Below, piece by piece: positions 10,596 through 53,138 of a stretch of DNA of 64,000 nt. The notes under the pieces were generated by a model that saw only the letters and a program-made list of their open reading frames with translations, was not told where the DNA came from and did no database searches. Positions within the stretch are counted from its first letter, which is position 1. Every line of letters starts with the position of its first letter. Made by a program: the position numbers and the translations under genes. Source of the stretch: Octopus sinensis (lineage: Eukaryota); contig NW_021833708.1 in assembly GCF_006345805.1 (NCBI RefSeq), positions 1 to 64,000 of the forward strand, given 5' to 3'.

Positions 10596-10996
10596 TCTTT
10601 ATATATAAAAGAGAAATTGTGTGTCTGTCTCCTACGATTTAGATTCCTAACTACTCCCACATTTTGCAGTGCAGTTTAACCAAAACCGGATATCTTATTG
10701 TCGTGATTCATATCGAGCCCTTCTGGGTATTAGCGCACGTCTACGATGTGTCTACGATTTTAAAATTAATTTACTATAATTTTTTTTTCCATTTTAATGC
10801 ATTTTTTCGCTATTATATAAGGGAAGTAACACTCTAAAAATGTCTACGATGAGTCAACGATTTAAAAAAAAATTTACCATCACTTTTTTTTCCATTTTTA
10901 ATGCATTGTTTTGCTAATTTTTGGCTATAACTCTCTAAAAATGCTTATATAGTTATTTCCCTTACAAACCCGAGCAACGCCGGGCGATACTGCTAG
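10596..10996 (+). mobile_element. Non-autonomous Helitron
   Basis: 5' TC after A, subterminal hairpin cccgagcaacgccggg, 3' CTAG followed by T (A|T insertion). Confidence 0.75.
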
Positions 10997-11004
10997 TATA
11001 TATG

Positions 11005-11302
11005 TAAAAGGGCACCATTCGAGCGTGATCATTACCAACGTCGCCTTACTGGCACCTGTGCCAGTGGCATGTGTAAAAAGATTCGAGCAAGGTCATTGCC
11101 AGTACTGCCTAACTGCCCCCCATGCCGGTGGCACATAAAAAGCACCCACTACACTCTCGGAGTGGTTGGCATTAGGAAGGACATCCAGCTGTAGAAACTC
11201 TGCCAGGTCAAGATTGGAGCCTGGTGCGGTCATCTGGTTCGCCAGCCCTCAGCCAAAATCGTCCAACGCATGCTAGCATGGAAAGCGGACGTTAAACGAT
11301 GA
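11005..11302 (+). mobile_element. RTE 3'-UTR-derived short element with (GAT) tail; related copies at about 1560-1615, 16215-16400(-), 26508-26915, 29180-29315, 31925-32160, 32695-32780(-), 36628-36960(-), 63490-63650(-)
   Basis: Shared ggcacgtaaaaagcacc motifs and aggaagggcatccagctgtagaaac...catgctagcatggaaa...cgttaaacgatgat end. Confidence 0.75.
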
Positions 11303-11311
11303 TATACATAC

Positions 11312-11540
11312 TTTTTTGCTACCCACAAGGGGATAAATACAGAGGGGACAAACAAGGACAGACAAACGGATTAAGTCGATTACATCGACTCCAGTGCGTA
11401 ACTGGTACTTAATTTATCGACCCCCGAAAGGATGAAAGGCAAAGTCGACCTCGTTGGAATTTGAACACAAAACGTAGCGGCAGACGAAGTACGGCTACGC
11501 ATTTCGCCCTGCATGCTAACGGTTCTGCCAGCTCGCCGCA
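11312..11540 (-). mobile_element. tRNA-derived SINE family D; other copies 32165-32355(-), 45170-45365(+), 61672-61889(-), 63160-63300(-)
   Basis: B-box-like gttcaaattcc followed by the shared core gaggtcgactttgcctttcatcctttcggggtcgataaa...aagtaccag. Confidence 0.75.
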
Positions 11541-12949
11541 TATACACACATCGCATACACGTGCACAAAAAAAGGTTCATACACATGTCTATATACGCAC
11601 ATGCACAAGTAAAAACAGGGCTAGAGGCAACATACATATGAAAAATAAGTAATAAAACACGTCTATATACACGCATACCCGTATGCACGTACACACACAC
11701 GTCTCTATACGCGCATACCCGCATGTCTATATACGCACTCGCACACAAAAAGGTTCATATACACATCTATATACGCACATGTACAAGAAAAAACGGCTAA
11801 AGGCAAAATAGAGGAAAATGGGCAAAAAGTGTGTAAAAACGACAAAGACTAAAACACGTCTATATACACACATACTCGCATGCACGTGTGTCCACGTACA
11901 AGCTTTTTATCTCTCTATACTTTTTACTTATATTTCTTTATATTTTATATATATACATATCTATATATATTTTTTACGTATTTATAGAGATATTGTTTTA
12001 TAGGTTTATTGCTCATATATTTTTTACACATATTATTTCTCTATTCTACCTTCCACCCTGCATTTTCCCTGTGCGTATATAGACGTGTATATGGAATCTT
12101 TTGTGCGCACGTGTGGATGTGTGCATGTGTGTGGATACAAGCGTATATAGATGTATGTGTGTGTGTGCATGCGAGCATGTGCGTATATAGGACGTGATTT
12201 ACTTATTGTCTTTTTACATATTTTTTTACACATTTTCCTGTATTTTTCCCTTTGGCCGTGTTTTTTCTTGTACATGTGCGTATATAGACGTGTGTATGAA
12301 CCGTTTATTATGCGCGCATGTGTGTGTGTGTATATAGACATGCGGCTATGTGTGTATATAGACGTGTGTGTTGACCAGACTATCAAATGCTGTTACACAT
12401 CCCTGGTCACAATGTGCTTTGCATCATTTCATCTTTCAAGCAGGCCAGTGAGTGTTCCCCCTAATCACAACACAAGTCTATTGGAGGGTGATCCATTTAC
12501 AGCTGAGTGGACTGCAGCAAAGTGAAATGAGGTGTTTTTGCTCAAGAATACAAGGGACTGCTCAGTATGGGAATTGAACCCACAATCTAGCCACTGTGAG
12601 TGCAACACCCAAACCACTAGGCCACATGCCTTTACACACACATGCGCACACAAACACACACGCACACACACACACATGTATACATATGCATATACATAGA
12701 TGTACATATGCTTGCATATGCATGTATGGTAGTCATTTTTACGTCTGTTTTCCATGCTAGCATGGGTTAGATGAATATGTATTTGATGCCTTTTTTTATT
12801 TCTGGATCCCCTTCATGTCCTTAATCCTTACCTGTTGCTCAAGTAGGGGATCTCTTATTCCAATGGTCTATTCGTCAACGGGAGAAATGATTACAATCTA
12901 ATCACCGAAAGCTAAGAAATTGCCAGAGACAACAAATGTAAATACACAC

Positions 12950-13495
12950 ACGCTTGTGTGTGTGTATGTGCTTGTGTGTGTGTGTATGTGTGTGTGCATG
13001 TGTGTGTGTATGTGTGTATGCTTGTGTGTCACACAAGCACACACATACAAGCACACACAAGGACAAGCAGACACACACACACTAGCACAAACACACACGC
13101 ACACACACATACACACACACACATACACACACACACACACAAGCACACACACACACACAAGCACACACACACACACACAAGCACACACACACACACACAA
13201 GCACACACATACACACACACAAGCACACACACAGGCCTGTGTGTGTGCGTTTGTGTGTGTGTGCGTATGTGTGTGTGCTTGTGTGTGTGCCTGTGTGTGT
13301 ATGTGTGTTTGCTTGTATGTGTGTGTGTGCTTGTATGTGTGTGTGTGTGTGCTTGTATGTGCGTGTGTGCTTGTATGTGTGTGTGTGTTTGCTTGTATGT
13401 GTGTGTGTGTGTGCTTGTATGTGTGTGTGTGTTTGCTTGTATGTGTGTGTGTGTGTGCTTGTATGTGTGTGTGTGCTTGTGTGTGTGTGTGCTGG

Positions 13496-13530
<35 letters not shown>
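12950..13530. repeat. Compound (CA)n/(TG)n microsatellite forming an inverted repeat centred on ACAGGCCTGT (13231-13240)
   Basis: ACAAGCACAC motifs on the left mirror GTGTGCTTGT motifs on the right. Confidence 0.85.
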
Positions 13531-13531
<1 letters not shown>

Positions 13532-13775
13532 ACCAATGAGACTGTGATAAGCAGAGCAATGTAGCAAACCAAAAGATGCAACACAATGACTGTTGTTAGG
13601 TTTATTAGTGTCAAGAAGAACATTCAGCTATAAATAATTGTTGAGATAAGCTGAAGTTTTTAATATTTATGTCATTTCATGGGAGATTTGAGAAACACAG
13701 TCTTCTTTAAATTGCTCTTTACCTCATTTTATAAGTTTTTAAAAACCATCTTACTTTCCTTTTTATTCAAAAGAC

Positions 13776-13859
13776 ATGGATGTAAATAAGATTATAAGCA
13801 ACATTCTGGATGGGGACTTTAAAGATGTCGAACGATTTATCAAAGAAAATCCTGAAACT
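13776..13859 (+). CDS. Coding exon 1, N-terminal ankyrin cap (MDVNKIISNILDGDFKDVERFIKENPET)
   Basis: Acceptor ttcctttttattcaaaag ends at 13773, ATG at 13776, donor gtaagt at 13860, phase 0. The acceptor implies an upstream exon (UTR or coding). Confidence 0.8.
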
Positions 13860-15472
13860 GTAAGTTTACTTTATATTGCTTCCTCAATGTTAAATGTTTG
13901 TTTATTATTTTATACACAATATTAAATGTTCCTAAATAACCAGATATATTTGTCCATAATATTTCATTTCTTTCTTTACCTCTTTCTTCTAATCCTCATC
14001 ATTGTCACTTTTTATAAACATTCAACCAGACAATGAGGCATGCCAGAATTGATGGAATGTGAGTGAGAGAGAAACCCATCCTCACACACTGCAATGGAGT
14101 ATTCTGGCAGGAAATATTCAGTCCAAGAGATGGGGGAAAGATGGACCCAATAGATAAATGATGACTTTGTCAAGAAATTCTCTTGCCATACACAGTTGAA
14201 GGTTTTACCGATGTCATGGGCTACGCTATATCTTTTGCAGAAGTTGTCAAACATAACCAAAACACTGGGGAGTCACGTAGGAATCAGACCCCTGCTTGAA
14301 CCGGCTTTATGGAACTGTACTGGGGCTCATTGAATAGAGAAAGATACCCAAAGGGACAAAGATGATGGTTGTTTATGACTTTTTACTTCATAATTGAAAT
14401 ATTGGAAGTTAGAATGACTGGCTGGTAGTCAGCAGACAGGACACTATCAGCAAGAATTATAAAACAGGGCTTCTCTAAGATAGTAGTACTTTCCTTCGGT
14501 AGGGATTGCGAAGAATTTTATAAGGACCAGGGAGCCAAGGAGGCTATGGTGGTACAAATATATGAAACTCAATGTGTAGTTGAGTTTGGATCAGAGAACC
14601 ATCATGGTTAGGGAGTGGTGGGTGGAATGATTCTGTAAAATCTATAGAGATACTCTTGGTAAGAGACCAGAAAATGAGGCTTTAATTTGGAAGGGAAGAC
14701 AGCTGACAAATGGTGAAATGCAGAAAAAACATCCTTTATTTTCTTGATGACCATCATACATGTATTTCAATGGTGGGTGAATGTCTGCCAGTTAGTGAGG
14801 GTAGGTGTTTTCCTCAAGGAGAAGTCGATAGTGTTGTTTGTACAGCTGTAATACAGTTGTGTATGAACCACTCACACCTTCTTACATATTGTATGGCTAC
14901 AAACTAATGTAAGCCCTGATACTGCTGCCGCATTTAGGCTCAAAATTCTGATCACTACTTTCATAATATTTCTTATTTTCTCCATTGTCTTTTCATTGTG
15001 TCTACCTTTCCATAGTTGCTCAATTAGTTGTGATTGGTGTCGTTCAAAGATGTCACAGATGTCTAATTACAAGTAATTACTTTGTAATAGATTCAGTGAC
15101 TAACATAAATAGATTTTCAATCTTTCCTTGAGCTTATGCATGAACTAAACAGTCTTTCTAAGCCTTTTCCAACTTGATTTACCTGTGCTCTACACCTTTC
15201 TTGTAGATTTGCTTTCATTCTTTTCCAAGTAGATCCCACATTGCTGTTTCACCAGACATATGACATCTGAAGATCCATGCTTCATTTCAAACATCCTGTT
15301 CTTCTCTCACCATTTCTTAAATCTCCTTCATCATTATAGCATTAAATAAAAGTGCTACTATGCCAGGCATCAGTGATAACAGTGTAGAATTTCATGAGCT
15401 TTACCAGGGAATACTAAACTAAAATCTCTCTCCTTTGATATATTTTATATATCTTCTCTTTCTTCTCTTCAG

Positions 15473-15624
15473 GTCAACCAAATAAACTCACACAGTAAAA
15501 CTTTCTTAATGGCAGCTTGTGAACAGGGCAGCACAAGTCTAATAGCCTTCTTGATAGAATCTGGAGCCAATATGGACATGAGTGACAAGGAAGGTCTGAC
15601 AGCATTACATTATGCTGTGATTAG
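15473..15624 (+). CDS. Coding exon 2, ankyrin repeats (VNQINSHSKTFLMAACEQGSTSLIAFLIESGANMDMSDKEGLTALHYAVI)
   Basis: Polypyrimidine tract plus AG, donor gtaagg, phase 0 to 2, G-x-TALHYA ankyrin motif. Confidence 0.9.
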
Positions 15625-16554
15625 GTAAGGCTTGAATTAACTAAAATCTTCAGATCTGTTTTTGTTTTGAAATTTTTTGCAATTCCAGACTATTTGAATA
15701 TCCACAGATACCATAATAGTGACAGTGTGACACGATAACAGCATGATAGTAGTAACCAAATAACATCTTTTACTCATTTTCTCCATGAATCCTCTTCATT
15801 GAATCACCAAAATCTTTTTCGTTATTTGTTGTCAAAACAGATTATTTTTGTTTTCGAGATATTCTTTGAGATCCAACAGTTCTTAAGATTGACCCAATGT
15901 GATTCAGTGTCTTCTCTTCATATTGATTATGGAGAGATCGATCAATTTTTCTCCAAAGAAAATGTTATTTGAGATCTAAAGCAACAAGAAAGATTCTCAA
16001 GCTTGTTTTTGCAGTAAATAATCTGTAAATTTCTTACAGAAATTATTTCTCACCTCCATCAGCAACTCAACACATTTTGAGATCTATTATATTTTGAATT
16101 GTGCTTTATAAGGTCATCTCTGGACAATAAAACATGTTTTGAAGTTCTTGTTAGTTTCTATAGCTTCTGCAGTCACAAATTGTTCCAGAATTTTGCACAA
16201 ACACGCACACATCATCATCGTCATCGAATGTTGCTTTTCCATGCTGGCATGGGTAGGAGGGTTTGATAGGAACAGACAAGTCAGAAGACCACACCAAACA
16301 CTACTGTCTGCTTAGGTTTGGTTTCTATGGCTGGACGACCTTCCTAACACCAACCACTTTGCAGAGTGTACTGAATGCCTTTTACATGCCATCAGAACCA
16401 GTGAGGTCACCAATTAATTGCAAGACAAAGACCTCTCGACTGGTTGAGGTGGTGGGATGGGGGAGCTAATATTGCTGGAGAGAAAGGTGTCTTGCATTAG
16501 AAGAGGGACATGTCTCTCTTCAGATGGAGAAGACAGAGGAGGGAAACACTAGGT

Positions 16555-17450
16555 TAAAAAATTCTGTTTGGTCCAAGCAAAGAAAAAGGAAAAAATAGTG
16601 CAATAGGTGTGAAACAACATGTAGTAAACGAATACTCTTACTCTTTTACTTGTTTCAGTCATTTGACTGTGGCCATGCTGGAGCACCGCCTTTAATCGAG
16701 CAACTCGACCCCGGGACTTATTCTTTGTAAGCCCAGTACATATTCTATCAGTCTCTTTTGCTGAACCGCTAAGTGACGGTGACATAAACACACCAGCATC
16801 GGTTGTCAAGCAATGCTAGGGGACAAACACAAACACACAAACACACACGCACACATATATATATATATACATATATACGACGAGCTTCTTTCAGTTTCTG
16901 TCTACGAAATCCACTCATAAGGCTTTGGTCGGCCCGAGGTTATAGTAGAAGACACTTGCCCAAGGTGCCACGCAGTGGGACTGAACCTGGAACCATGTGG
17001 CTGGTAAGCAAGCTACTTACCACACAGCCACTCCTGTGCCTATGAAAAAAAATATGGCGAACGGGAGGTGGGGAGACGACTCTGAAAATTCAAATCTCAC
17101 CACTTCCCCATTCGTCGGCGAATTTTTTGTTCTTCATTTTCGTTTTTTACACATTATTTTACACCCAGTACTCTACTTTTGTTCAATTTTTGTGACGGTG
17201 TGGGTGGGTGGGGTGCGGACTTGGATGATTCACACGATCCGGTAACCTCACTAGACAACTGGTCCCAAAAATGAAAACAAGAAGTGTAATAGGTGTAAAG
17301 CAACGTTGAGTTTTCGGATCCTGTGAGATTGATCGTGTGAATTTTCCGAGTCGTCTCCACCACCCCTCGTTCGCCAACGTATTCGTTTACTACATGTTAT
17401 TTTACACCTATTGCACAATGTTTTTTGCTCGAGTCAAACACTGGAGTTTA
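16555..17450. mobile_element. MITE with long TIRs; a SINE is inserted in the left TIR
   Basis: 17056-17091 is inverted relative to 17339-17375, and 16595-16634 is inverted relative to 17378-17420. Confidence 0.65.
16635..17040 (-). mobile_element. tRNA-derived SINE family C; other copies about 26190-26507(-), 51673-52032(+), 55305-55450(+), 55687-56047(+), 59040-59447(-), 62520-62700(-, decayed)
   Basis: Head gagtggctgtgtggtaag...gggttcagtcccactgcgtggcaccttgggcaagtgtcttct, central (TG/TA)n, tail cagtcaaatgactgaaacaagtaaaagag. Confidence 0.85.
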
Positions 17451-17456
17451 ACTTAT

Positions 17457-17490
<34 letters not shown>

Positions 17491-17871
17491 GTGGAAGCAC
17501 TCCGTCGGTTACGATGATGAGGGTTCCGGTTGATCCGAATCAACGGAAAAGACTGCTCGTGAAATTAACGTGTAAGTGGCTGAGCACTCCACAGACGCAT
17601 GTACCCTTAACGTAGTTCTCAGGGATATTCAGCATGACACAGATAGTGACAAGCCCGGCCCTTTGAAATACAGGTACAACAGAAACAGGGAGTAAGAGAA
17701 AGTTGTGGTGAAAGAGTAAAGCAGGGATCACCACCATCCCCTGCCGGAGCCTCGTGGATCTTTTAGGTGTTTTCGCTCAATAAACACTCACAACGCCCGG
17801 TCTGGGAATCAAAACCGCGATCCTATGACCGCGAGTCCACTGCCCTAACCACTGGGCCATTGCGCCTCCAC
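17491..17871 (-). mobile_element. tRNA-derived SINE with the same head as 520-803 but a different 3' half
   Basis: Reverse complement reads ggaggcgcaatggcccagtggttagggcag...cacctaaaagatccacgaggctccggc...ctctttcacca, then an unrelated tail ending accgacggagtgcttccac. Flanked by (TA)n. Confidence 0.75.
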
Positions 17872-18759
17872 TATATATATATATATATATGTATCTATAT
17901 ATATATATCTATCTATATATATATATATACACACATATATATATATATATACACACACATATATATATATACATACACACACACACACATATATATATAC
18001 ACACACACACACAAATATATAATAAATATTGGTTTGTTTATATATTCATTTATGTGTGTTATATGACCGCCATACTTCCTTGTTGGTCACTGTTTCTTTT
18101 GGCGGTAAAAATACGTCTCGTTGCCCTTAACAACAAACTTTCTCTTGCATAGTCTGTTGCTATGACAACATTACATTTGCAGACGTAGTTTTCCCGCCAA
18201 TTACGACGTGCTGTTGTTGTTGTTGTTTTTTTAGATTGATGAGAAATCTGCTATCAATTAGTTTGTCTATAATTTTCAGACATTCCATCTTTCGCAAAAG
18301 GATTACAATACATTTTTCAATGTATACCAAATATATAGATACTAACAACGGTACTTAATCCTTGTTTTGTATTGTACACTCGCTGGGATAAAAATATTTA
18401 TACTTTATACCCTCACCTATTAATATGTGTATACACACACACGTACACATTTGTTTACTGTGTATTAACGATTATACGTATTTCAGTGGCTCATATTACT
18501 CTGTCTGTCTTTCTCTCTATATACATACATATATATATATATACATACACATACATGCATATATATATATATAAATATATATATACATACACATATACAC
18601 CTATATAATATTATTGACTTTGACATTTCAACTAGCGATATATACATACATATATGTATGTATGTGGGTGTATATATGTATGTATATATATATATATATA
18701 CATACATATATGTATGTATGTGGGTGTATATATGTATGTATATATATATATATATATAG

Positions 18760-19450
18760 GCATACTTACACAACTGGGCCCCCACGACGAATTTGTTTCC
18801 TTATAACTTTTAGACAGATGGATATCTTTTGATGAAATTTCTATGACAAAAATGCTTCAAATGATGAAGATTCCAATTATATTGGAATTTGTTGTGAAAA
18901 CAAATTTTCAAACGTTGAGAAGTTGACTTAAATCCTTATAGAAACTTTCAGAAAAATGGATATTTTGTTTGTGTGAAAATTTCTACAAATCCCTTTCAAA
19001 GGATTAGATTAGGATTATATCGGAATTTAACATGAAAAAACGTTAAATATTTGGTGGATACACACACATATATACTGACAACATCACGGTTATTTTTCCA
19101 AAGTTCATCTTTCAGTTCTGATGTGTATCAGTGTATATCTCTGCGAATCCACCAATTTAACTTTTCTTCATATTAAATTCCGATATAAGTGGAATCTTCA
19201 CCATCTGAAACGGTTTTATTGAAAATTTCATTAGAAAATATTTATTTTTGGGAAAGAAAGCCGACTCGGGCAAACTTTCCCAATTTCTCTGCACCCACTA
19301 AAAATTTTTTCTCACAATAAATTCCAATATAATTGGAATCTTCGCCTTCTGAAGCATATTTTTGAAAGAAATTTCATTAAAAAATATCGTTTTTCTAGAA
19401 GTTACAGGGTAACAAATTCGTCGGGGGAGCACACTTGTGTAGTTATGTCT
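18760..19450. mobile_element. MITE with ~140-bp imperfect TIRs
   Basis: cccacgacgaatttg...gaagattccaattatattggaattt is mirrored by aaattccaatataattggaatcttc...caaattcgtcgggg. Confidence 0.7.
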
Positions 19451-19608
19451 ATACAGGCATGCACGCACACAGACATATATATATATATACACACGCGGCT
19501 GTAATATATATATATAGGTTTTTATGCATTTAATTGAACACGAGTGTATATTTAATGTAATTGTTAAGTGAATGTCTGTGATGTTTTATGTATTTTCCTT
19601 CCTTTTAG

Positions 19609-19765
19609 ATATAAAATTGATGCAGTGGCCTCCTTAGTTTCCAGGGGAGCAAATGTTAATAAGCAGGACTCAGACGGCGACACACCTCTACATCTGGCTG
19701 TGAGGAACAACTATGAAGATGTAGTCAAAGTCCTGTTAAGTAGCAAAGGAAATAACACTTTACAG
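19609..19765 (+). CDS. Coding exon 3, ankyrin repeats (YKIDAVASLVSRGANVNKQDSDGDTPLHLAVRNNYEDVVKVLLSSKGNNTLQ)
   Basis: ttccttttag acceptor, gttagc donor, phase 2 to 0, GDTPLHLA motif; lies within ORF 19568..19879. Confidence 0.92.
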
Positions 19766-20639
19766 GTTAGCGAATACATTTATATTTGTGTATATAGATA
19801 TGTATATATATGTATGTGTGTGTTATATGTATATGATGTATACATACAGTTTAGTGCCCCAAATTTCGTTTCTTCATAACTGATGATCCATATTATTTTA
19901 AATAAAACTTGCTGCAAGACTTCCTTTTCTACCCCACAAAGAAACCACCCTTTCTTTAAATTTTTTTCCCCGACACAAATCCCGCTTTTCGGTTAAGGGA
20001 AATACGAATCTGCAAAAAAATTGGCAAAAATCGGCATTTTTAAATTACCCCCACCCCCATTTCCTTCATTCTTTACTTTTTTCACAATTTTTTTTTTTTT
20101 CAGAATTTGCAGAAAAATACGGAAATGATGATTCGGACAAAAATTTCAAAACATTTCTGTAGTTGGGGTTAGGGTTAGTGTTGGGGAAAAAAAGTCAAAG
20201 TTGAAGAATTTTGGAGGGGGTGGAAATTCCACTGCCGATTTTTTGGCAATTTTCCGGAACCTCCGAGTCCGAAATCGGGGGGTTTTGGCAAAAAAATTCT
20301 TTGAATAAGCAAATTTAGGTGAAAATGGTGGTGGTGGTGGTGGGGGGACTCTTTTGAAAGTTGCTCATTTCCTTGTGTGAGAGTGTATATATATATATAT
20401 ATGTGAGAGTGTATATATATATATGTGTGTGTGTGTTTATATGTATATATGTGTGTGTCTGTGGGTACAGGTATGATATGAACCTCATTTATTTACTCCT
20501 CTCCATTTATTTACTCCTCTTCATTCCCCCTGTTTATTAATCTGATTCTTTCTCTTTTTCTGAAATTTTTCATTTTTGCGCTGCCCCCCCCCATCCACTT
20601 GACGCCATCTTTGATGTCTTTATTGTTTATCTTTTTTAG

Positions 20640-21406
20640 GTCACTCAGCGAAATAATAAAGGTTGGACACCTCTGCATCGTGCCTCGTATAATGGACACA
20701 CAGACACAGCTAAACTTCTCCTACAACAAAATGGCACTGATGTGAGGGTGGTAAACAAATATGGTTGTACACCTCTCCATCTTGCCTCGTATAATGGACA
20801 CACAGACACAGCTAAACTTCTCCTACAACAAAATGGCACTGATGTGAGGGTGGTGACCAACGCTGGTTGGACACCTCTACATCATGCCTCATATAATGGA
20901 CACACAGACACAGCTAAACTTCTCCTACAACAAAATGGCACTGATGTGAGGGTGGTGACCAACGATGGTCGGACACCTCTCCATCTTGCCTCTAATCAAG
21001 GACACACAGACACAGCTAAACTTCTCCTACAACAAGATGGCACTGATGTGAGGGTGGTGGACAACGCTGGTCGGACACCTCTACATCTTGCCTCATATAA
21101 TGGACACACAGACACAGCTAAACTTCTCCTACAACAAAATGGCACTGATGTGAGGGTGGTGACCAAAGCTGGTTGGACACCTCTACATCTTGCCTCTAAT
21201 CAAGGACACACAGACACAGCTAAACTTCTCCTACAACAAAATGGCACTGATGTGAGGGTGGTGACCAAATATGGTTGGACACCTCTCCATCTTGCCTCGT
21301 ATTATGGACACACAGACACAGCTAAACTCCTCCTACAACAAGATGGCATCGATGCCAATAAAGTGGACAAAGCTGGTGACACTCCTCTCCATCTGGCAGT
21401 TCGAAA
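20640..21406 (+). CDS. Coding exon 4: 7.5 near-identical 34-aa ankyrin repeats (102-bp units)
   Basis: Acceptor cttttttag ends at 20639, donor gtaagt at 21407, phase 0 to 2. Units start at 20640, 20742, 20844, 20946, 21048, 21150, 21252 and 21354. Consensus V-R-V-V-x-x-x-G-x-T-P-L-H-x-A-S-x-x-G-H-T-D-T-A-K-L-L-L-Q-Q-(N/D)-G-T-D. Confidence 0.95.
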
Positions 21407-22190
21407 GTAAGTCCCCAATGGATTTGGATTATCCAAATCTGTTTCTTTAATGTTTTCAATAACGTTTGTTTTCTTGTTTTGAGTCATTCATGTCATAATC
21501 CCACCATGGGACGTCGTGCTTCAACTCTCTCTCTCTCACACTCTAATGACACTGTAACCTACTTCATTAATTAATCATCATAATTATTTATGTTGTTGCT
21601 GTTGTACCTGACTAGATTCTTTACTTCATCTCATCCTTCGTTACCTCAACGTTACAAGTTCAAATCTTTCCTTTTTCTTCTTTTCATTCCATATAAAACA
21701 CCTCACCCCTCTCTCTTGTAATTTTTCCTCTTTCTCTGACCCTGGGCTAAATACAGAATCATTCCCTTACAGTGTTTAGTTTGATCTGTTTATGTTCCAA
21801 GTTCAAATCCTGCCAGAGTATTTATTAACAACCTGGAGTGAAAATCTGTACCAGTAATATCCAGGGTTCATTTAATAAATTGTCCTCCCTCTTTTCTCCT
21901 GTTTTGTGATGTCTGATTGCTGTTGGCAAAATACCTTGTGGTATTTATTTACCACACTTTATGTTCAAAGTTCAATCCTGCTGAGGTCACCTTGTCCTTC
22001 CATCTTTGCTAGGCTAATAAAATACAATACCAGTCATGTACTGGGGTCCTTATAATCCACATTAACGCTTCTCCCCATCCTAAATTTCATGGCTATATAA
22101 CAGTTGTTCATCATACCATATATAGATTGCCGTGTTTACTCAGGTGTGTATATATATCGTTGATCTATAATGTAGAGAGTATGTCGAATA

Positions 22191-22738
22191 TACGAGGGGG
22201 TACCCAAAAGTGGCCGGAAACGCTTCTGTAGGGCAAGGCCATTGAAGTTCAGGCTTCTGCTGCTGGAAGCCACTTGATGTGATACTCAGGCATCAGCCTG
22301 CCAAGCGGCATCTTTGAGGATGGTGCTGTTACCATGTGGTGCATCTTTGTTTTGCAGGGCTTCTCCCTTGTTCGAGTTTTGCAATGGCTGAAATGAAGGA
22401 TCAGCTTGCTTCCATGAAATTCTGTTTTGTGCTGGAGAAAACTGCAGCCGAAACAGTTGTCATGCTTCAAACAGTTTACAAGGACACTGCCATGATGCCA
22501 CGAGCAAAACACAAAATCAGGAGTGGTTTTCATGCTTTTTAAATGGTCACTTGTCACTTGAGGTCCAACCTCATTCAGGGCAGTTCCAGCACTGCTACAA
22601 ATAGTGGGAAACATGTCTGGGTCGATGCATTGCTTCAAATGGGGACTACTTTGACGGTGATAATAGTGTTAATACGTAAAACTAAGCAAAGAAAATAATA
22701 TTGCAAAATTCTGGGTCCTTCTGGGTCCCCACTTCATA
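22191..22738 (+). mobile_element. Internally deleted mariner element
   Basis: TA-CGAGGGGGTACCCAAAAG left TIR, decayed right TIR plus TA. Transposase N-terminus QLASMKFCFVLEKTAAETVVMLQTVYKDTAM. Confidence 0.75.
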
Positions 22739-22983
22739 TATATATATTTATATTAAAGGGTAAAATCATAAATGATTTTTACCAAGTGGTCAGCGCGGAA
22801 ATATAACCACATAGGTAAATTTTTATAAACAATTTATAATTATATACATAATTATAACAAGGGCTTGGCTTGCTCCTCACCACGCACTGAAAAATAGACA
22901 TCAAAAGACACTATTGCCACCATTAATTCTCCGAGAAAAACACAGTACATGTGTTATAATTATGTATATAATTGTATAATGTT

Positions 22984-23016
<33 letters not shown>

Positions 23017-23426
23017 ATATGTAGGATCCAAGGATTGAGACGAGTAGGAGGTGAGCTTTCAGAACAAAAAGGGTTTTATTGGGGTGCAAGGTTGTTGGTT
23101 TTTCCCTTACCGCATCTTTGTGTTTGAAATGTGCCTCCTATTGACAGTGTAAAACTTGATTTAATCAAGACACCCTTGGTCTGAAGAGTGGCCTGTGGTA
23201 TACACCTCGTTTGGATATTTACCAGTTCTGATGTTCCACCTGCTTTGAAACATACGTAGCCAGATTTTATCTTAACTCATATATATATATACACAAATGT
23301 ATAATGTGTATTGTGTGTATGTAATTATTGATGTAATTAGGTTATAATGACCTAATTACATTTGTTTTCATTGGTTAATCTAATAATAATAATTGTTTTT
23401 CCTCTCCTCTTTTGTATAACTTTCAG

Positions 23427-23462
23427 GCAACAATATGGTGTGGTATCGTGATGCTGGCCCAG
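23427..23462 (+). CDS. Coding micro-exon 5 (expected K-QQYGVVS-x-MLAQ), carries an apparent 1-nt deletion
   Basis: tataactttcag acceptor, gttagt donor. It is 36 nt where 37 nt is needed to join phase 2 to phase 0. As given it reads ...GTA TCG TGA (stop); adding one base restores ankyrin helix 2 (VVSxMLAQ-DSVKLDIEN). Confidence 0.7.
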
Positions 23463-23774
23463 GTTAGTTAACAAATACATATTATATCCTCTCTCTAGTA
23501 TTCAATATTTATATCATCAAAATACCAGTGAAATTCTGGGAGTAGATTTAATCAACTGCACTGCAGCAGCCTTTAAATAGCAGGTCTTGGGTCTGTGAAG
23601 AATAATTATGTTGGTAATAACAATGATGATAGTAGTCGTAGTGATAACAGTCCAACTGACCACCACTGCTGATAGTACTATCTTTAATGGTCAGACAAAA
23701 CAAGATCATTATGAATTCAACCCATATATATCAGATTATATATATCATCATCAAACACTCTGCCAAATGCCCAT

Positions 23775-23847
23775 GGGCATATGGCATAGTGGTTAATAGT
23801 ACAGGCTACTAACCCCAAGATTCCGAGTTCAGTTACAGACCGTGACT

Positions 23848-23896
<49 letters not shown>

Positions 23897-24050
23897 CAAC
23901 AACATTGAAAAATACCTTTGGAATGAGAACATAGGTTCGAAATTTCCTCGAGACACCTGACAAAGGCTGGAGAGTATATCAGCCGAAACATTGTGTTAAC
24001 AACAAACAAGATGAGGACAAATACATCAAATGTAAATAATGTAAATAATG
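23775..24050 (+). mobile_element. tRNA-headed SINE-like element with internal (AAT)n and a decayed minimal hammerhead motif
   Basis: A box TGGCATAGTGG (23782-23792), decayed B box, (AAT)n, hammerhead-like 23952-23997, tail (TGTAAATAA)2. Confidence 0.65.
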
Positions 24051-24639
24051 ATGATGATCATTTTAGTGTCTGTCCTCATGTTGTGTGTGTGTGTAAATTG
24101 TTGGTGTCTGCATTTTATCTTGTGTCCAATAATTATTTTGCTTCTTGGCTGCTTTTTCCCTCTGCACGTATGTATAAATGTGTGTCTATATATATATTAT
24201 ATATATATATATAATATATATATTATGTATACCCAGAAAGAGAGTTACTCTTGTCAGACACATTGCACACTCAGATTATGCAGCAGAAATAAGTTAAAGG
24301 TCCTTGTCCCCAGCAACTAAGCTAAATGAGGGCATGCTACACACAGTCTCTATTGCTTCATTAATCCATTATCATCAGTACATGATGAATCAACTTCCCT
24401 TCTCCTCTCTCCCTGCCTAACTCAACGGATTAACTACCCTTACTGTATTTGTCTACCTAACTTATTTACCTGTATTTGTATTAACATGGCTTTGCATGAA
24501 TGCCGGGATGCAACACCCTCCACTGTTGGTGGTGACAATACCTGATTAACTCCTCTTTACAGGTATCCATACTAACACCTCTGTGCTAATGCCAGCACAA
24601 CACCCGCGTCCAGTGGTATTAGCAAGTGTTACATGAATG

Positions 24640-25560
24640 ATGCAGGATTAAATGCAAGGACAACTGCTAATGACATGCTGGCAGGAAAATGCTAATAACA
24701 ACCTTTTCAGATGCTGATAGCTGCAGCCAATGTAGACACAGCACTGTCGATGTAAGCACATGCAACAAGTATCTCGTCTTATGCCCCCCCCCCCCAAAAA
24801 AAAAACTGCCCCTACAAGGTCTGTCAAATGAACTGAAGGGCTACTTCTATGACACTCTTCTGCTGGCCACTTCAAAGATAAATGACCGTGACCTTCGTGG
24901 CTGGTGATTTCAATGGACGTGTTGGGCGGCACCCAGGTATCTTCCATGGGGTACATGGTGGGACACAGAATTGTGGGAACAAAACCATAGCCACCATGTA
25001 CACCATGGAAGCCCCCTGCATGTTGTCCAACGTGCCCATTGAAGTCGCCAGCCACAAAGAGAAGGTCCCTGTCATTCATTGACGAGGTAGTCTGCAAGAG
25101 GGTGTCATAAAATCAGTCTTTCTGTTCATCAGGTAGCCCTGGCTGAGGGTCATAAGCCGAGATAATGGTTGCTAATCCATGTTGCAGCACTAATCTAAAC
25201 TTAAGTATTCCATCACAGACTCTGACTATCTCGATTACCTTATCAGCCCATTTTCTCTGCAAGAAGTATACTCATGCCCCGACTCCATCAGTGTGCCCTA
25301 CCCAGAAAATCTTATACTTATGTTCTTTGCCTGTGAGGAACCTAGGAGAACTTCCTCTCCACTTCTTGGATGCAGCACAAATCTACACGTCTCTGTTCAA
25401 GCATGTTAACAATCTCAGCAGACCTACCTTTCAGTGTGCCGACGTTGAGAGTACACCTGAGGGTGTTGAAGGTATGGTCCATGAGACCTGGGGGTGGGGG
25501 ACAGCAGCATCATGTACCTGAAAAAGAAAGCTTTGCATTTGGCAGAACCCAAAAATACAA
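24640..25560. mobile_element. RTE-like endonuclease fragments in both orientations
   Basis: LFVAGDFNGHVG on the minus strand, and a diverged copy of the same segment on the plus strand (about 24830-24962). Confidence 0.6.
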
Positions 25561-25884
25561 TAGTCTTCAACCTGCAAACACTACACCATCATTTTATGCA
25601 CTACATTACATAGGAGATAACCCTATATATATAAATATATGTATATATATTAAATTATAAAATGATATATATTAAATCAAAATGTGGGTGAAAATTGGAT
25701 ATAATTTAATAAAACATCATTTAAGACCAGTGGTCTAGCGTATAAAAAATGAGATTCAGTAAATGATTTTCTGGAGAAATAATTCTTAGTGGTTGAGACC
25801 TATGTGGATCTCTTTTTAGCGCAACGGCTTCCACATAGTGGTTCCCTCATATTTATGTATAAAATACTATTTACTGAATCTAAG

Positions 25885-25919
<35 letters not shown>

Positions 25920-26915
25920 TTATGTATGTATGTATGTATTGGGATTGTATCACCAATTATTATGACATGATACTGTTTACACTATAACCTTGTAGTAACA
26001 ATAAAACATATTACGGATCAGGGTAACAACAACAATCCATACACAAACCAACAAACAATGAAAACAACACCTTACGACTTCCTGCAATTAACACCTACTC
26101 TCTCTGGTCTCTCACTCAGACTGCTACTATTCATAGTCGTTCAGTCAAGTCTGTTCTTGCATGGGTTCTTGTGACTCTCGCCACAACATGTAATCGAGTC
26201 CAGGACTTATATTTTGTAAGCCTAGTACTTATTCTGTTGATCCTTTTTGCCAAATCGCTAGCTTACGGGGATGTAAACACACCAGCATCGATTGTTAAGC
26301 AATGTTGGGAGGACAAACACAGACATACAAACACACACACACACATATACGATGGGCTTCTTTCAGTTTTTGTCTACCAAATCCACTCATAAGGCTTTGG
26401 TCAGCCCGAGATGATAGTACAAGACACTTGCTCAAGGTGCTATGCAGTGGGACTGAACCCGGAATCATGTAGTTGGTAAGCAAGCTATTTACCATAGCCA
26501 CTCCTGTATAAAAAGCACCATCCATTCTTGGCCGTTGCCAGCCTCGCCTGGCCCCCGTGCCAGTGGCACGTAAAAAGCACCATCCGTTCATGGCCGTTGC
26601 AAGCGCAGCCCCGACTGGCCTCATGCCAGTGGCACGTAAAAAGCACCATCCGTTTGTCGCGTTGCCAGCCTTGCCTGGCCCTCGTGCCAGTGGCACGTAA
26701 AAAGCACCATCTGTTCGTGGGCGTTGCCAGCCTTGTCTGGCACGTAAAAAGTACCCACTACACTCATGGAGTGGTTTGGCGTTAGAGGGCATCCAGCCGT
26801 AGGAAACATTGCCAGATCAAACTGGGCCTGGTGCAGCCTCTGGCTTCCCAGACCCCAGGAACCGTCCAACCATGCTAGCATGGAAAGCGGACGCTAAACG
26901 ATGATGATGATGATG

Positions 26916-26954
<39 letters not shown>

Positions 26955-26955
<1 letters not shown>

Positions 26956-28565
26956 TAGCGTAAAAACTCATAAGAGAAAAAATTTCGAAAATATTATTTC
27001 TTATTGAACATATTAATTTATATATAGAGGGCATAATTATAATACATGCCAGGAGGCATTAATATACTTGCCAAAGCTAAGAGGGACAATCAGTCATTTC
27101 TACCAAAAATATTACTAATCCACCCGAATGCAACTTTTCAAAGTAAGACATTTAAAAATATAGGCCTGTATCACAGTGATTTCATACTTACGTAATCATC
27201 AGAAGGCTGAATGTATTATAAATAAACAACGACCCTGCCTCGCTTAAGCCGAACAGCAACTGATCACATCAACGAAGCACATGGGTGAGTTTATATATAT
27301 TACATCCGGGTGAATGGCAAACTTTACAAAATTGCATTTCGGGAGAGGAAAGTTTTTCGGATAAAAATTTGCAAGAAGGACAACTACTTAATAAGGAAAA
27401 CTTAACAAGTAATTTCAGGTAGATAGCGTAAAAACCTCATAAGAGAAAAAAAATTTCGAAAATAATTATTTCTTATTGAACATATTAATTTATAATGAGG
27501 GCATAATTATACATAATGCCAGGAGGCATTTATATATACTGGCCAAACGCAAGAGGGACAATCAGTCATTTCTACCAAAAATTTACTAATCCCACCGATG
27601 CAACTTTTCAAAGTAAGACATTATGCCCTCTATATATAAATTAATATGTTCAATAGAAATAATTATTTTCGAAATTTTTTCTCTTATGAGGTTTTACGCT
27701 ATCTACCTGACAATTTCTTGTTAAGTTTCCTTATTAAGTAGTTGTCCTTATTGCAAATTTTTATTCCGAAAAAACTTTTCCTCTCCCGAAATGCAATTTT
27801 GTAAAAGTTTGCCATTCACCCGGATGTAATATATGAAAACTCACCCATGTGCTTCGTGTGATGTTGATCAGTTAGCTGTTCGGCTTAAGCGAGGCAGGGT
27901 CGTGTTTATTTATAATACATTCAGGCCTGCTGATGATTACGTAAGTATGAAATCACTGTGATACAGGCCTATATTTTTAAATGTCTTACTTTGAAAGTTG
28001 CATTCGGTGGGATTAGTAATATTTTGGAGAAATGCTGATTGTCCCTCTTAGCGTTTGGCACGTACATATAATGCCTCTGGCATGTATGTATAATTAGGCC
28101 CTTATATAAATTAATATGTTCAATAAGAAATAATATTTCGAAATTTTTCTCTTATGAGGTTTTTACGCTATCTACCTGACAATTTCTTGTTAAGTTTCCT
28201 TATTAGTAGTTGTCCTAATTGCAAAAATTTTATTCCGAAAAAACTTTCCTCTCCCGAAATGATTTGTAAAGTTTGCCATTCACCCGGATGTAATATATAT
28301 AACTCACCCAGTGCCCTTCGTTGATGTGATCAGTTAGCCTGTTTCGGCTTAAGCGAGGCAGGCCGTGTTATTATAATACATTCAGGCTGGCGATGATTAC
28401 GTAAGTATGAAATCACTGTGATACAGGCCTATATTAAATGTCTTCTTGAAAGTGGCATTCGGTGGATTAGTAATATTTTGGTAGAAAATGAGATGTCCCT
28501 TTAGCGTTTGGCAAGTATATATCATGCCTCCTGGCATGTATGTATAATTATGCCCTCTATATATA
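26955..28565. repeat. ~468-bp monomer array: about 1.4 copies (26955-27622) followed by about 2 inverted copies (27621-28565), hammerhead-bearing
   Basis: atagcgtaaaaa recurs at 26955 and 27423. The reverse-complement series restarts at about 27621, 28094 and 28548. Bounded by (TA)n on both sides. Confidence 0.9.
27923..27970 (+). ncRNA. Type I hammerhead ribozyme
   Basis: Stem I AGGCCUG (27923-27929)/CAGGCCU (27964-27970). Core CUGAUGA (27930-27936). Stem II UAC/GUA with a GUAA tetraloop and a U.U base. GAAA (27949-27952). Stem III UCA/UGA. Predicted cleavage AUA| after 27963. Variant copies at about 28383-28430 (+) and 27162-27209 (-). Confidence 0.8.
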
Positions 28566-28576
28566 AATATATATAA

Positions 28577-28624
<48 letters not shown>

Positions 28625-28926
28625 CTCACTTCCATAACATTCATGTATATGTGTGTGTATGTACAGGAATGTTAAGGATGTGGACACTAACCAACTCACC
28701 TGTTTTATGAACCCCTTATTAATATAGCAACATCATAATTCTTCTTTACTAGTTTTGATCTGCTAATTATATGTTCACTCTTGTTCTGCTCCCCTAAAAT
28801 TTTCTATAGTGAGAGATAAATATAGATTAGGCTGAAACAATCTGTTTAAGACCTCTTAATAGATTTATCATGTCCCTTACACATATCCCATGTACATTTT
28901 CAATTTCTATTTTTACTTCCACAAAG

Positions 28927-29139
28927 GATTCAGTGAAACTGGATATTGAGAATCATAAGAAAATGACACCATTGATGGAAGCCGTGTCCAGGGCCCACCT
29001 CGGAATTATCCATAAACTTATTATAAATGGTGCAAACATAAATGCTGTCGACAATGATGGCAATAATTGTTTGCACCTCTCAATAATAAAGAAAGAGATG
29101 TTCCATTCTGAGGTGGAACCCATTCCCATTTTAGATGAG
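28927..29139 (+). CDS. Coding exon 6, ankyrin repeats (DSVKLDIENHKKMTPLMEAVSRAHLGIIHKLIINGANINAVDNDGNNCLHLSII...LDE)
   Basis: ttttacttccacaaag acceptor, gtaagt donor, phase 0 to 0, within ORF 28870..29163. Confidence 0.9.
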
Positions 29140-30835
29140 GTAAGTTTTAAAAATTGTTTGTGAATATGTGTGTGTTGTTGGCATTAGGAAGGGCATGCAA
29201 CCGCAGAGACTATGCCAAAACTGGCAATTGGTGCCTGAGCAGCTCTGCAGCTGCCCAGCTTCTGCCAAACTATCCAACCCATGCCAGCATAGAAAACGAA
29301 TGTAAAATGATGATGAGGAGGATGTGTGTATGTGTGAATGAGAGAGAGAGAAAGAGAAAAGGCAGACATTGTTTGCTATTTTCTTTCACTCCCATCCACT
29401 TCTCTTCCTTTAGTATTAAATAATTCAGTTTCTCCTGATAGCACTAGTTGTATTATGTAACTAACAATATTCCATCTTCTTTCACCTTCAAAAGCATGGC
29501 CACTCCACTGTAAAGAAGGTAACCCATCTTAAATATGTGTCATGTAAACACTGCCATAACTGTATGAAGGAGAGGTGACCAACGACAGAGATAAGTCTTT
29601 AAATTTAAGAAAGAGAAATTCACAAACTGTTTTAAATATCGAATTTCAAGTTAAACGAGTTGAACTGTGTTAATTGCTCTCTGAACTTTGCCCTGCTTAA
29701 TCTTATTCTAGCAGCTATGCTCTTGGCGCATCCACCTCCACTACTGACTTGATTACCTAGATAACAGTAGCTATCAACTACTTCTAGGTGCATATATATA
29801 TATATATATGTGTGTGTGTATGTGTTTGTTTGTTTGAAAGACCTCAGCATCTATCCACTGCTAGATCTGATGGTGTTTATTGTCTATTGTTGCAGAATTT
29901 AAGCAGCTCTTTGATTCCCAAATATGTAACTGTCACTACAGATGTGTGACTGTATTTCAGACAGTTGATGGTCACCTATGTATTGTTGTAATGTCTTCTT
30001 TGGTGAGAAGAAGCTACTCGAGAAGTCAACGACCCATTATTATAGGAATTGTCTATCAGACTAACAGTTTCAACAATTTCTTGACTATAATGTGTTGGTG
30101 TGTTGCCTCAACCACCACACCAATCTTTACTTCACTTCATCAGCCAAAAATGTTTCTTTATAAATTTTGGAAACATTATTGATATGCTTGGATATGTCTG
30201 TCTGGTGTTGGTTTTGTTGCTGTGTCTGAAGAAATTATTATGTTCTTGGTGTTCTCTGTTCATTGTTTGTTGTTATGGAAATGAGTTGCACTTTGTGACC
30301 AGTGAAACGTTTCCCAATCAATATTTGGATTATCGAAATTACCAGTAGGAAAATATGGGGGACTGCTTTCATAGATGCAGATCTGAAGATGTCAAAAATC
30401 TGAGTTTTGATGGCAGTTTTGCAGATGGTAAACAAATTCAAATAGGAGTATATATGTTGTTAAGAAAATACTTCTTGTTGTGACCAGTTAAAATCTCCAC
30501 AAGGAATTACAGAAGATCTTGAGTGATCATAGACCATCAGACGACCCCCATGGTAATTAAAATGGCCTTTGTGTAACAAAATGTAGCTTGCCATTGTTTG
30601 TTGTTATGTTGTTGTGCTATATTTATATATACAATACTCTTCCATAAGTATTTCTTTTGTTATGGCCAATTGGCTTTATCAAGCCAGTTGTAAAGATAGG
30701 TTCTTGTTGGTTTGTTGTGCTCTGTTATTTGTGATACTTGTTCCATTATATTTCCTACATTTGACATGATTTGTTTATCTACAATATATATTTGTGTAAT
30801 ATTCTACTCATCGTTTTATATTTCATCATTTGCAG

Positions 30836-31014
30836 TGCTGCAGAGAGCTCCAACTGGACATGGATAGGAGGCTCTCTGGAATAGTAGTTTTGAGTTACCT
30901 TGCCAGCCAAGGAGCCAACTTATACCATCGTAATAAGAAGAAGAAAGTGACCCCATTGGACTACATAAAAGATCAACATGTGAAAGAAAATTTAAAAACA
31001 TTTTTACAATCACT
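30836..31014 (+). CDS. Coding exon 7, last ankyrin/cap (CCRELQLDMDRRLSGIVVLSYLASQGANLYHRNKKKKVTPLDYIKDQHVKENLKTFLQS)
   Basis: tttgcag acceptor, gtaagt donor, phase 0 to 2. Resembles the Mind-bomb segment [24 protein letters not shown], recalled from memory. Confidence 0.88.
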
Positions 31015-33006: not shown

Positions 33007-33149
33007 GTGTCGGTGGTGTCAAGAGAAAAAGGCTACTGTCACACTCCATCCATGTCAACATACTGTTATTTGTCAGAATTGCTGTTCTCAAATGACATTT
33101 AAGCAATGCCCCATATGTCGACAACACATACTCCGGAAAAGTGGATTTG
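33007..33149 (+). CDS. Coding exon 8, C3HC4 RING finger (CRWC...PCQHTVICQNC...CPICR)
   Basis: ttccacag acceptor, gtaaga donor, phase 2 to 1. Eight Zn ligands with IAP/MIB-type spacing. Confidence 0.92.
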
Positions 33150-33429
33150 GTAAGAACATTCTTTCTTGATCTGTCTGTTGTCTCATTAACTTTCTGGTAT
33201 GGAATAATGCATTTCATATTGTAGTGGAGACATGCAACTCCTTGTTTGTAACTATATATTATTAACACTTGTTATAATGTTTGCCATCCTTTTAGACATT
33301 TTATACTCACACTCGTTAGTTTTTAGATGTGATCAATGCTAAAAGAGACATTGTTTTCTGACTCTTTCACCTTTTGGCTTTACTTTTGAGTTGATTCGTT
33401 TTAATTCGAACATGAAGCCTGGTCATTGC

Positions 33430-33670
33430 TCCAAGGTGGTATCAGAAAGTTCACGGACTAGTTCTGTAGCATGCCAACAGATGGCAGCACACCGTTGCAT
33501 GCACAGTGAGAGCTAGCAATGACTTTCATGAGGCGGTGTGCTGGGTGACACCACTGCGTTTACTTCAAAAGTTGTGAAATTTGTGCTTTTGTGGTCATTT
33601 GTAGGCTGTAGTCTGCAATTTTCTAATGGGCAGGAACAAATAACCAATGTGAAATTTTGCGTTAAACTTG
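33430..33670 (+). mobile_element. Mariner 5' remnant
   Basis: EQITNVKFCVKL resembles the mariner transposase N-terminus, preceded by a decayed TIR-like aaggtggtatcagaaagttc. Confidence 0.5.

Positions 33671-53071: not shown

Positions 53072-53138
<67 letters not shown>

Follow-up and report, generated by a model that had tools for sequence, protein, structure and literature searches.

Near-identical repeats with hypervariable binding positions are a hallmark of the NOD-like receptors (NLRs) that serve allorecognition and immunity in fungi. Fungal repeats of high internal conservation (HIC), defined as units with more than 85% identity across 100 amino acids or more, combine a changing repeat number, within-array shuffling and concerted evolution with a few positively selected hypervariable positions on the β-hairpin and inner helix of the concave ankyrin (ANK) face; near-identical repeats of this kind are rare in animals, where they make up 0.8% of the repeats of ANK, TPR and WD type (PMC4986451). 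Here we analyse an exon of Octopus sinensis that shares several of these features. It lies on the + strand at positions 20640-21406 of the window, by which we mean the 64,000-nt stretch analysed (positions 1-64000 of contig VCDQ01005283.1, assembly GCA_006345805.1; our locus L004 is 100% identical to the window at offset 13450), and it encodes a tandem array of ANK units. We consider it probable, at roughly 60%, that the exon is a fast-evolving, germline-encoded binding array, in which unequal crossing-over or slippage together with selection diversifies the concave face.

The array exon is the fourth coding exon of its gene and comprises 767 nt, open throughout and ending in phase 2, between the acceptor tttatcttttttag/GT and the donor AA/gtaagt. 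A codon table gives the unit count reported in the initial annotation: seven full 102-bp (34-amino-acid) units, starting at 20640, 20742, 20844, 20946, 21048, 21150 and 21252, and a 17-amino-acid half unit at 21354-21406 that encodes ANKVDKAGDTPLHLAVR-K. Tandem Repeats Finder places the repeat at 20661-21348 (period 102, 6.7 copies, 91% matches, 0 indels, score 1131). Unit 1 (20640-20741) is an edge unit: its 5′ part, VTQRNNKGW, is the first-unit type of the gene family described below, and its codons 15-34 are the same as those of the internal units. The internal units 2-7 (20742-21353) are 87-96% identical in DNA, with variation almost confined to codons 4-18 (of the 15 variable bases in units 2-6, 14 fall within codons 1-18); their proteins are 79-91% identical (mean 85%) over 204 amino acids, a borderline value for HIC repeats, and the DNA of the corresponding O. 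vulgaris units is up to 98% identical.

The distribution of variation within the unit proposed from the initial reading stands at every codon. Codons 19-25, 27-30, 32 and 34 are the same at all three bases in 7/7 units; among units 2-7, nine codons change the amino acid (5, 6, 7, 9, 14, 17, 18, 31 and 33) and four change only silently (4, 12, 16 and 26). Variants recur in different units (TCT AAT CAA in units 4 and 6, CGG in units 4 and 5, AAA TAT in units 2 and 7), and the mosaic character suggested for these combinations is borne out by failure of the four-gamete test in 29 of 55 pairs of informative sites. The best parsimony tree of the window units accordingly takes 26 steps against a minimum of 20, i.e. 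six extra steps.

The array is predicted to fold into a regular ankyrin solenoid, with most of its variable positions on the concave face. Pfam Ank_2 matches the array product with E = 3e-177 over 9-10 repeats, which places it among the ankyrin repeats (PF00023 / PF12796), solenoids of ~33-residue units that each have a TPLH motif, a pair of antiparallel helices and a β-hairpin loop. An AlphaFold model of the exon, built from a 76-sequence alignment, has a mean predicted local distance difference test score (pLDDT) of 98.2, with helix 1 at unit positions 11-18 and helix 2 at positions 21-29; Foldseek superimposes it on an extended designed ankyrin repeat protein (DARPin; 6mol_A) with a TM score of 0.93 and a root-mean-square deviation of 1.4 Å, within a range of TM scores (0.92-0.93) that includes ankyrin-1. 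A model computed from the single sequence was discarded as a meaningless all-β structure (pLDDT 62.6).

As an a-priori test set we used the repeat positions randomised in DARPins (2, 3, 5, 13, 14 and 33), which we take, from the TPLH motif and the DARPin consensus, to be unit codons 6, 7, 9, 17, 18 and 4; a related library randomises positions 2, 3, 5, 10, 13 and 33 (PMC4308713). Five of the six positions vary in the array (P = 0.002-0.005; in the window alone, 5/9 variable codons fall within the set, hypergeometric P = 0.0024), and in the model the variable positions of the set map to the loop before helix 1 and to helix 1 itself, in line with the proposal that the array varies at the β-turn and helix-1 positions of the ankyrin repeat. 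The array thus resembles DARPin libraries (ANK-N5C; PMC4308713, PMC8683736) in its fixed, consensus-like framework and in its variability at positions 2, 3, 5, 13 and 14, and also 10. It differs from them in being natural, in its 34- rather than 33-amino-acid unit, in the absence of capping repeats of the designed type, in an invariant Val at position 33 (unit codon 4), in variation at positions 1 and 12 and at two loop positions, and in consisting of 19 observed units rather than a combinatorial library. In the fungal protein Pa_3_8560 five hypervariable positions lie on the concave face; the octopus array has seven to eight on that face, together with two positions, codons 31 and 33, in the loop that follows helix 2.

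Comparison with the orthologous locus of Octopus vulgaris (L005; OX597842.1 29707944-29744258, at 29.71 Mb, reached via P0130) shows how the array has changed between species. The two loci are collinear over window positions 18395-34284, and the introns flanking the array have ~97% column identity; counted by hand, there are ~20 substitutions in ~1470 columns downstream and ~18 in ~850 columns upstream (1.4-2.6%), and a divergence of ~2% fits the split of the two species ~2.5 million years ago (PMC10700109). The O. vulgaris array exon (L005 2186-3667) has 1482 nt, made up of 14 full units, a half unit and 1 nt (Tandem Repeats Finder: 13.8 copies, 92% matches). The changing unit number and order that had been suggested for this exon can therefore be followed as germline evolution between species, with 7.5 units in O. 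sinensis and 14.5 in O. vulgaris between introns only ~2% diverged.

The framework GHTDTAKLLLQQ.G.DVRVV is common to all 21 full units of both species, and the amino-acid-variable codons of the 19 internal units are 5, 6, 7, 9, 14, 16, 17, 18, 31 and 33. At the edges the units are orthologous: unit 1 is 94% identical between species, and the half unit, which corresponds to L005 3615-3667, is ~91% identical with four non-synonymous and no synonymous differences. The internal units have no one-to-one partners. Their best DNA identity is 96% across species vs. 98% within O. vulgaris, and the nearest unit lies in the same array for 11 of the 13 O. vulgaris internal units and is an O. sinensis unit for none of the 13; as judged from these alignments, within-array nearest neighbours of this kind are the pattern of concerted evolution or lineage-specific duplication. 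Each of the 19 internal units has its own combination of residues at positions 5, 6, 7, 9, 14, 17 and 18, and none of the combinations is common to both species. Where the arrays end, 12/102 bases separate the last full unit of one species from that of the other, while the adjoining intron is identical over its first 118 bases.

Non-synonymous change is concentrated at the predicted binding positions, and there it exceeds silent change, as had been expected of the variable sites. In the window alone, the a-priori set has 9 non-synonymous events per 14.0 sites against 6 silent events per 25.0 sites, an approximate ratio of non-synonymous to silent rates (omega) of 2.7 (Fisher p = 0.016, binomial p = 0.049), with an omega of 0.35 elsewhere. 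For the 19 internal units of both species the counts are 17 non-synonymous events per 14.3 sites and 7 silent events per 24.7 sites; omega is about 4.2 (p = 7e-4) within the set and 0.47 outside it, so that positive selection confined to binding-surface positions, a feature of HIC repeats, is found here as well. Non-synonymous events are 5-6 times denser at the set than at other codons (p = 1.5e-7), and in pairwise comparisons of the 19 units the proportion of synonymous differences (pS) is 0.094, while that of non-synonymous differences (pN) is 0.259 at the set and 0.046 elsewhere. Non-synonymous events at binding positions also differ in kind, with 8 transversions to 1 transition vs. 4:7 for all other events (p = 0.03). 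In those ANK parts that can be anchored between the orthologues (exon B, unit 1 and the half unit), 14 non-synonymous differences stand against one synonymous difference (pN 0.059, pS 0.014); 14 changes in 236 non-synonymous sites are about three times the neutral expectation at ~2% intron divergence (Poisson P ~4e-4, calculated by hand).

The gene belongs to a family that we found in Octopus only. Its nearest proteins by identity are those of O. vulgaris and O. sinensis annotated as "MIB2-like" and "ankyrin-3-like", which have an ANK-RING-Death architecture, and a search with the non-repetitive C-terminal half returned 23 homologues, all of them from Octopus (O. sinensis, O. vulgaris and O. 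bimaculoides). The paralogous family that had been anticipated thus takes the form of an Octopus-restricted tandem ANK-RING-Death cluster, of which we found no description in the open-access literature. Paralogue loci L001-L003 of O. vulgaris (OX597842.1, 28.22-29.09 Mb) are collinear with the window at a mosaic 67-98% identity, and their introns are 90-97% identical to those of the window, again in mosaic fashion. They contain five array exons of 2.5, 2.5, 3.5, 3.5 and 4.5 units, with the same acceptor, tttatcttttttag/GT, and the same donor, AA/gtaagtcccc, as the window exon; that such homologous exons lie inside annotated O. vulgaris proteins agrees with the coding status first assigned to the array from its open frame. 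Repeat number, a variable feature of fungal HIC arrays, therefore varies here both between orthologues and among paralogues.

Paralogous units keep their positional orthology (first, middle, last), being 85-94% alike between genes and 67-89% within a gene, and window units 2-7 are 59-74% identical to any paralogous unit. The low identity within the paralogous genes shows that near-identity of units is a property of the window's gene lineage and not of the family; concerted evolution across the family was rejected, as the O. vulgaris paralogues retain positional orthology between genes. Among the O. vulgaris paralogues the array exon has a pN/pS of 2.0-4.0 (one-sided Fisher p = 0.005-0.024; pS 0.04-0.12), whereas the other exons have a pN/pS of 0.25-0.9, or above 1 without significance. 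Positive selection on the ANK array is thus a family feature even where the units are not near-identical.

We propose that the exon encodes the target-binding ankyrin array of one member of the cluster, whose proteins are probably E3-ligase or death-fold adaptor proteins. Unequal crossing-over or replication slippage between 102-bp units would have multiplied a single 34-amino-acid unit, as the 7.5 units of O. sinensis and 14.5 of O. vulgaris suggest, and the absence of one-to-one internal units, the within-array nearest neighbours and the many four-gamete failures point to continuing unit duplication, loss and partial exchange. Unit turnover of this kind would keep the framework identical even at silent sites, while selection would favour amino-acid change at the concave β-turn and helix-1 positions (omega ~4 there, <1 elsewhere). 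The binding surface that results would be encoded in the germline and would be different in each unit as well as between species; such a surface might recognise fast-changing partners, e.g. pathogen or conflict-related proteins, and pass the signal to the RING and Death domains. Gain, loss and shuffling of units together with diversifying selection on the binding face, taken as germline evolution, are supported by the comparison of the two orthologous loci. Of the idea that the exon is a candidate variable recognition module, unit turnover and surface-restricted replacement have held up; the "DARPin library" put forward with it serves as an analogy and not as a mechanism.

Several observations weigh against this proposal. 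Downstream of the array, O. sinensis has a 1-nt deletion in a mini-exon (23427-23462, +; 36 nt vs. 37 nt in O. vulgaris, TCGTGATG vs. TCGTTGATG) that is present at 37 nt in both the O. vulgaris orthologue, where it is intact, and a paralogue. Through the deletion the array loses its connection to the RING and Death domains: an in-frame TGA (23449-23451) arises, overlapping the ATG (23451-23453) with which the annotated downstream gene starts, and owing to this frameshift the locus is annotated as two products, one of 394 amino acids with ANK repeats only and one of 295 to 312 amino acids called "MIB2-like" (XP_029656407, XP_029656408 and XP_029656409, all starting at the overlapping ATG). In O. 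vulgaris the array itself contains a +1 insertion, GAAT in unit 8 (L005 2990-2993; OX597842.1 ~29,710,933); the annotated 379-amino-acid product stops there, and units 9-14 are open in the shifted frame. The string GAAT is a hybrid of the codon-31 variants GAT and AAT. If both frameshifts are real, the array lineage may be decaying. The protein collections yielded no protein containing the array, in a search that included the 394-amino-acid product and a 222-amino-acid open reading frame within the exon; the 394- and 379-amino-acid gene-table products are themselves missing from the homologue collection, so that absence from it says nothing on expression. In addition, a spatial permutation test for recombination of the PHI type (pairwise homoplasy index) was not significant for the window units (p = 0.17); it leaves recombination and recurrent mutation unseparated, and some homoplasies may be recurrent (e.g. 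CGG to TGG, a CpG change at codon 9). Event counts are small, and as minimum counts on recombining sequences they make omega and its p-values approximate. The DARPin positions are also the least constrained ones in ankyrin repeats generally, so that enrichment by itself would fit relaxed constraint too, and the comparison with silent and intron rates is the only argument for positive over relaxed selection. High internal conservation is not shared across the family, the five paralogous arrays holding two to four diverged units, and as both assemblies are built from long reads (PacBio for O. sinensis, Oxford Nanopore Technologies (ONT) for O. vulgaris; PMC10700109), unit numbers could be off.

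Taken together, the independent frameshifts in the two species, the annotation of the locus as two truncated genes, the lack of an array-containing protein in the collections and a whole-unit pN/pS of ~0.9 would all be expected of a dying gene, that is, a pseudogene in both species in which slippage changes array length and the surface differences are a copied legacy of the few diverged units of an ancestor. We take this explanation seriously and find it doubtful. Non-synonymous change at the binding positions is not only denser than elsewhere but above the silent rate; variants copied from a few ancestral units should recur, yet all 19 surfaces differ and none is common to both species; and constraint on the rest of the locus is indicated by a RING exon conserved at 100% and an exon D that shows two non-synonymous to three synonymous changes. 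The two frameshifts, moreover, differ between the species, and each is a single-base indel beside a two-base run in a long-read assembly (PMC10700109): the mini-exon deletion could be a PacBio indel error, and the GAAT insertion either an error of the ONT consensus or a genuine lesion. Were the array exon (exon C) of the window spliced directly to exon F, the mini-exon would be bypassed and an open ANK-RING-Death frame of 564 amino acids would result, a candidate isoform; exon F starts in phase 2 and is thus frame-compatible with the end of the array exon too, and the same splice from array exon to RING exon is used by the O. vulgaris paralogue products P0077 and P0082. On these grounds of phase and precedent, an intact ANK-RING-Death isoform is possible in O. 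sinensis.

Technical error could reach beyond the frameshifts, since the window lies on a 73-kb unplaced contig of a PacBio assembly, the O. vulgaris genome is ONT-based, and the hybrid GAAT is what mis-assembly of near-identical 102-bp units might produce; array length and unit order could have arisen in the same way. That the array as a whole is such an artefact is nevertheless highly improbable: at 0.8 and 1.5 kb the arrays fall far short of the length of the reads, each is flanked by introns that are unique and align well and by the same edge units, the frame of the O. sinensis array is open without interruption and free of indels between units, and two independent assemblies give the same unit type in different, internally consistent sets of units. 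A plainer biological account would be a recent intragenic duplication of the ordinary kind, with purifying selection on the framework, drift at free surface residues and no special role in recognition. The variable positions of the array are indeed the highest-entropy positions of natural ankyrin repeats generally (PMC4308713), and the excess in the window alone is modest (omega 2.7, p = 0.016-0.05). Drift, however, cannot lift non-synonymous change above the silent and intron rates, as is observed both at the a-priori set (pN 0.26 vs. pS 0.09) and in the anchored ANK parts, where the ratio of 14:1 stands beside introns only ~2% different, and the pN/pS of 2-4 across the paralogous arrays is likewise against it; we judge this account quite unlikely. 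A fast-evolving germline binding array is thus the explanation we favour.

The likeness to fungal NLRs has clear limits. Unlike the fungal receptors, neither the products of the locus nor those of its relatives showed a NACHT or NB-ARC domain in domain scans; the octopus array lies on the N-terminal side of a RING finger and a Death domain, and its host is an animal, a cephalopod, rather than a fungus. Its variation is known between species and paralogues, that of the fungal NLRs between individuals; no exchange of units among family members is seen in octopus, where the unit type is private to this gene lineage. One may go further and suppose that the gene encodes an animal equivalent of the immune receptors that fungi build on HIC repeats: the array would then be the sensor of an ANK-RING-Death protein that keeps watch inside the cell, and unequal crossing-over would renew its binding face fast enough to make it highly polymorphic in octopus populations and conceivably even somatically unstable; we hold this extended reading to be unlikely.

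With the MIB1/MIB2 E3 ubiquitin ligases the family shares ANK repeats followed by a RING of the C3HC4_3 type, and the ANK domain of MIB1 (8v0e) is a detectable sequence relative. It differs in having one RING rather than two or three, in its C-terminal Death domain and in being restricted to Octopus in the searches made. Pfam scans of the 394- and 312-amino-acid products and of paralogue P0074 found only ANK repeats, one RING and a Death domain, with no MIB/HERC2, ZZ or MIB-repeat domain; since MIB/HERC2 and ZZ are absent, the octopus proteins are not MIB orthologues. The somatic receptors of the lamprey variable lymphocyte receptor (VLR) type are alike in being repeat proteins whose binding face is diversified unit by unit. 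Unlike VLR genes, the array is a complete open exon, and the 64-kb window holds no donor cassettes or further ANK unit cassettes elsewhere; nothing points to somatic diversification of the array.

Around the array, the gene can be followed on the + strand from 13776 to ~39410. The first coding exon (13776-13859), encoding MDVNKIISNILDGDFKDVERFIKENPET, contains the start codon of the upstream 394-amino-acid ANK-only gene model (L004 gene table; a five-exon model reproduces the 394 amino acids). ANK exon A (15473-15624), encoding VNQINSHSKTFLMAACEQG...LHYAVI, ends in phase 2 and was located by tblastn with O. vulgaris family proteins (80-88% identity); ANK exon B (19609-19765), encoding R-YKIDAVASLVSRGANVNKQDSDGDTPLHLAVRNNYEDVVKVLLSSKGNNTLQ, has five non-synonymous and no synonymous differences from the O. 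vulgaris orthologue. Beyond the array and the mini-exon, exon D (28927-29139) encodes a further ANK repeat and the start of a linker (DSVKLDIENHKKMTPLMEAV...); it is identical to XP_029656407 (P0141) and 97.7% identical to the orthologue. Exon E (30836-31014) encodes CCRELQLDMDRRLSGIVVLSYLASQGANLYHRNKKKK...FLQSL and ends in phase 2; Nei-Gojobori values for its comparison with L005 were discarded as invalid because of a one-codon indel. Exon F (33007-33149) starts in phase 2 and encodes the RING finger (zf-C3HC4_3, Pfam PF13920, E = 1e-10). The Death domain begins in an exon at 35586-35657, which encodes DSVMVEEKHLHWVSRSLAGKWQEL, and is completed with the stop codon in the last coding exon at 39193-39410 (...ECLSSEFNRISL before the stop; Pfam PF00531, E = 8e-10; the end is good to ~2 nt). 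The downstream Pfam content of the locus is accordingly one ANK repeat, a zf-C3HC4_3 RING and a Death domain.

Two of these downstream parts show features of their own. The RING exon is identical to that of the orthologue at 141/141 nt (window 33008-33148 vs. L005 17444-17584) between introns that differ by ~2-3%, which, at the level of aligned sequence, points to strong constraint or recent conversion. Between the RING exon and those of the Death domain lies a tandem repeat of 159 bp (33984-34631, +; four copies, 88% matches), each copy of which is a 51-nt linker exon with its intron; it forms a second, independent exon-level repeat in the same gene as the array. Copies 1 and 4 of the linker (33998-34048 and 34480-34530) are used singly or together in the annotated isoforms X1-X3, whereas copies 2-3 look degenerate; the linker motif is VCPK[S/F]EEKAVQ.V.ES., and paralogous proteins hold up to five such 17-amino-acid modules (P0128).

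The relation of the window to the cluster changes along its length. Over its 5′ introns and exon A (region 9270-18600) the window matches three O. vulgaris paralogues, 0.6-1.5 Mb away from the orthologue, at 90-96% identity, and its 3′ Death-domain end (34844-39574) is closer to L002 and L003 (85-90%) than to the orthologue L005 (~68%); such mosaic identity suggests gene conversion or recombination between cluster members. L003 was itself rejected as the orthologue: it is 95-98% identical to the window at 29.7-34.3 kb, but its array exons are of unrelated 2.5-unit types. Within L003 (49639-55437) the pair of ANK exon B and a 2.5-unit array exon is tandemly duplicated ~3.6 kb apart inside one annotated gene; the two array exons differ by six changes, all six non-synonymous, and the duplicated pair may represent alternative cassette exons or a partial gene duplicate. 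The window also contains a ~400-bp interspersed repeat in both orientations (16639-17043, 51673-52025, 55691-56046 and 59047-59453), present in all the O. vulgaris loci too, and satellite-like tandem arrays at 8201-8975 (192 bp), 26509-26741 (62 bp) and 52233-53838 (270 bp), two of which have the motif TAAAAAGCAC.ATCCG in common; these are probably octopus SINE (short interspersed element) or satellite families.

In conclusion, an Octopus gene cluster displays the pattern known from fungal NLRs with a different output, RING and Death domains instead of a NOD, and in one of its lineages the number of units has doubled between species that split ~2.5 million years ago. If the frameshifts are real, the locus would be a clear case of a decaying gene with an unstable repeat. 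If the array is expressed, it would offer a natural experiment in the diversification of ankyrin binding surfaces and a candidate for a recognition protein that adapts rapidly, in a group of animals whose means of immune recognition are little understood; and should it prove to be the sensor of a surveillance protein, cephalopods would possess a germline-diversifying recognition system built on ankyrin repeats.

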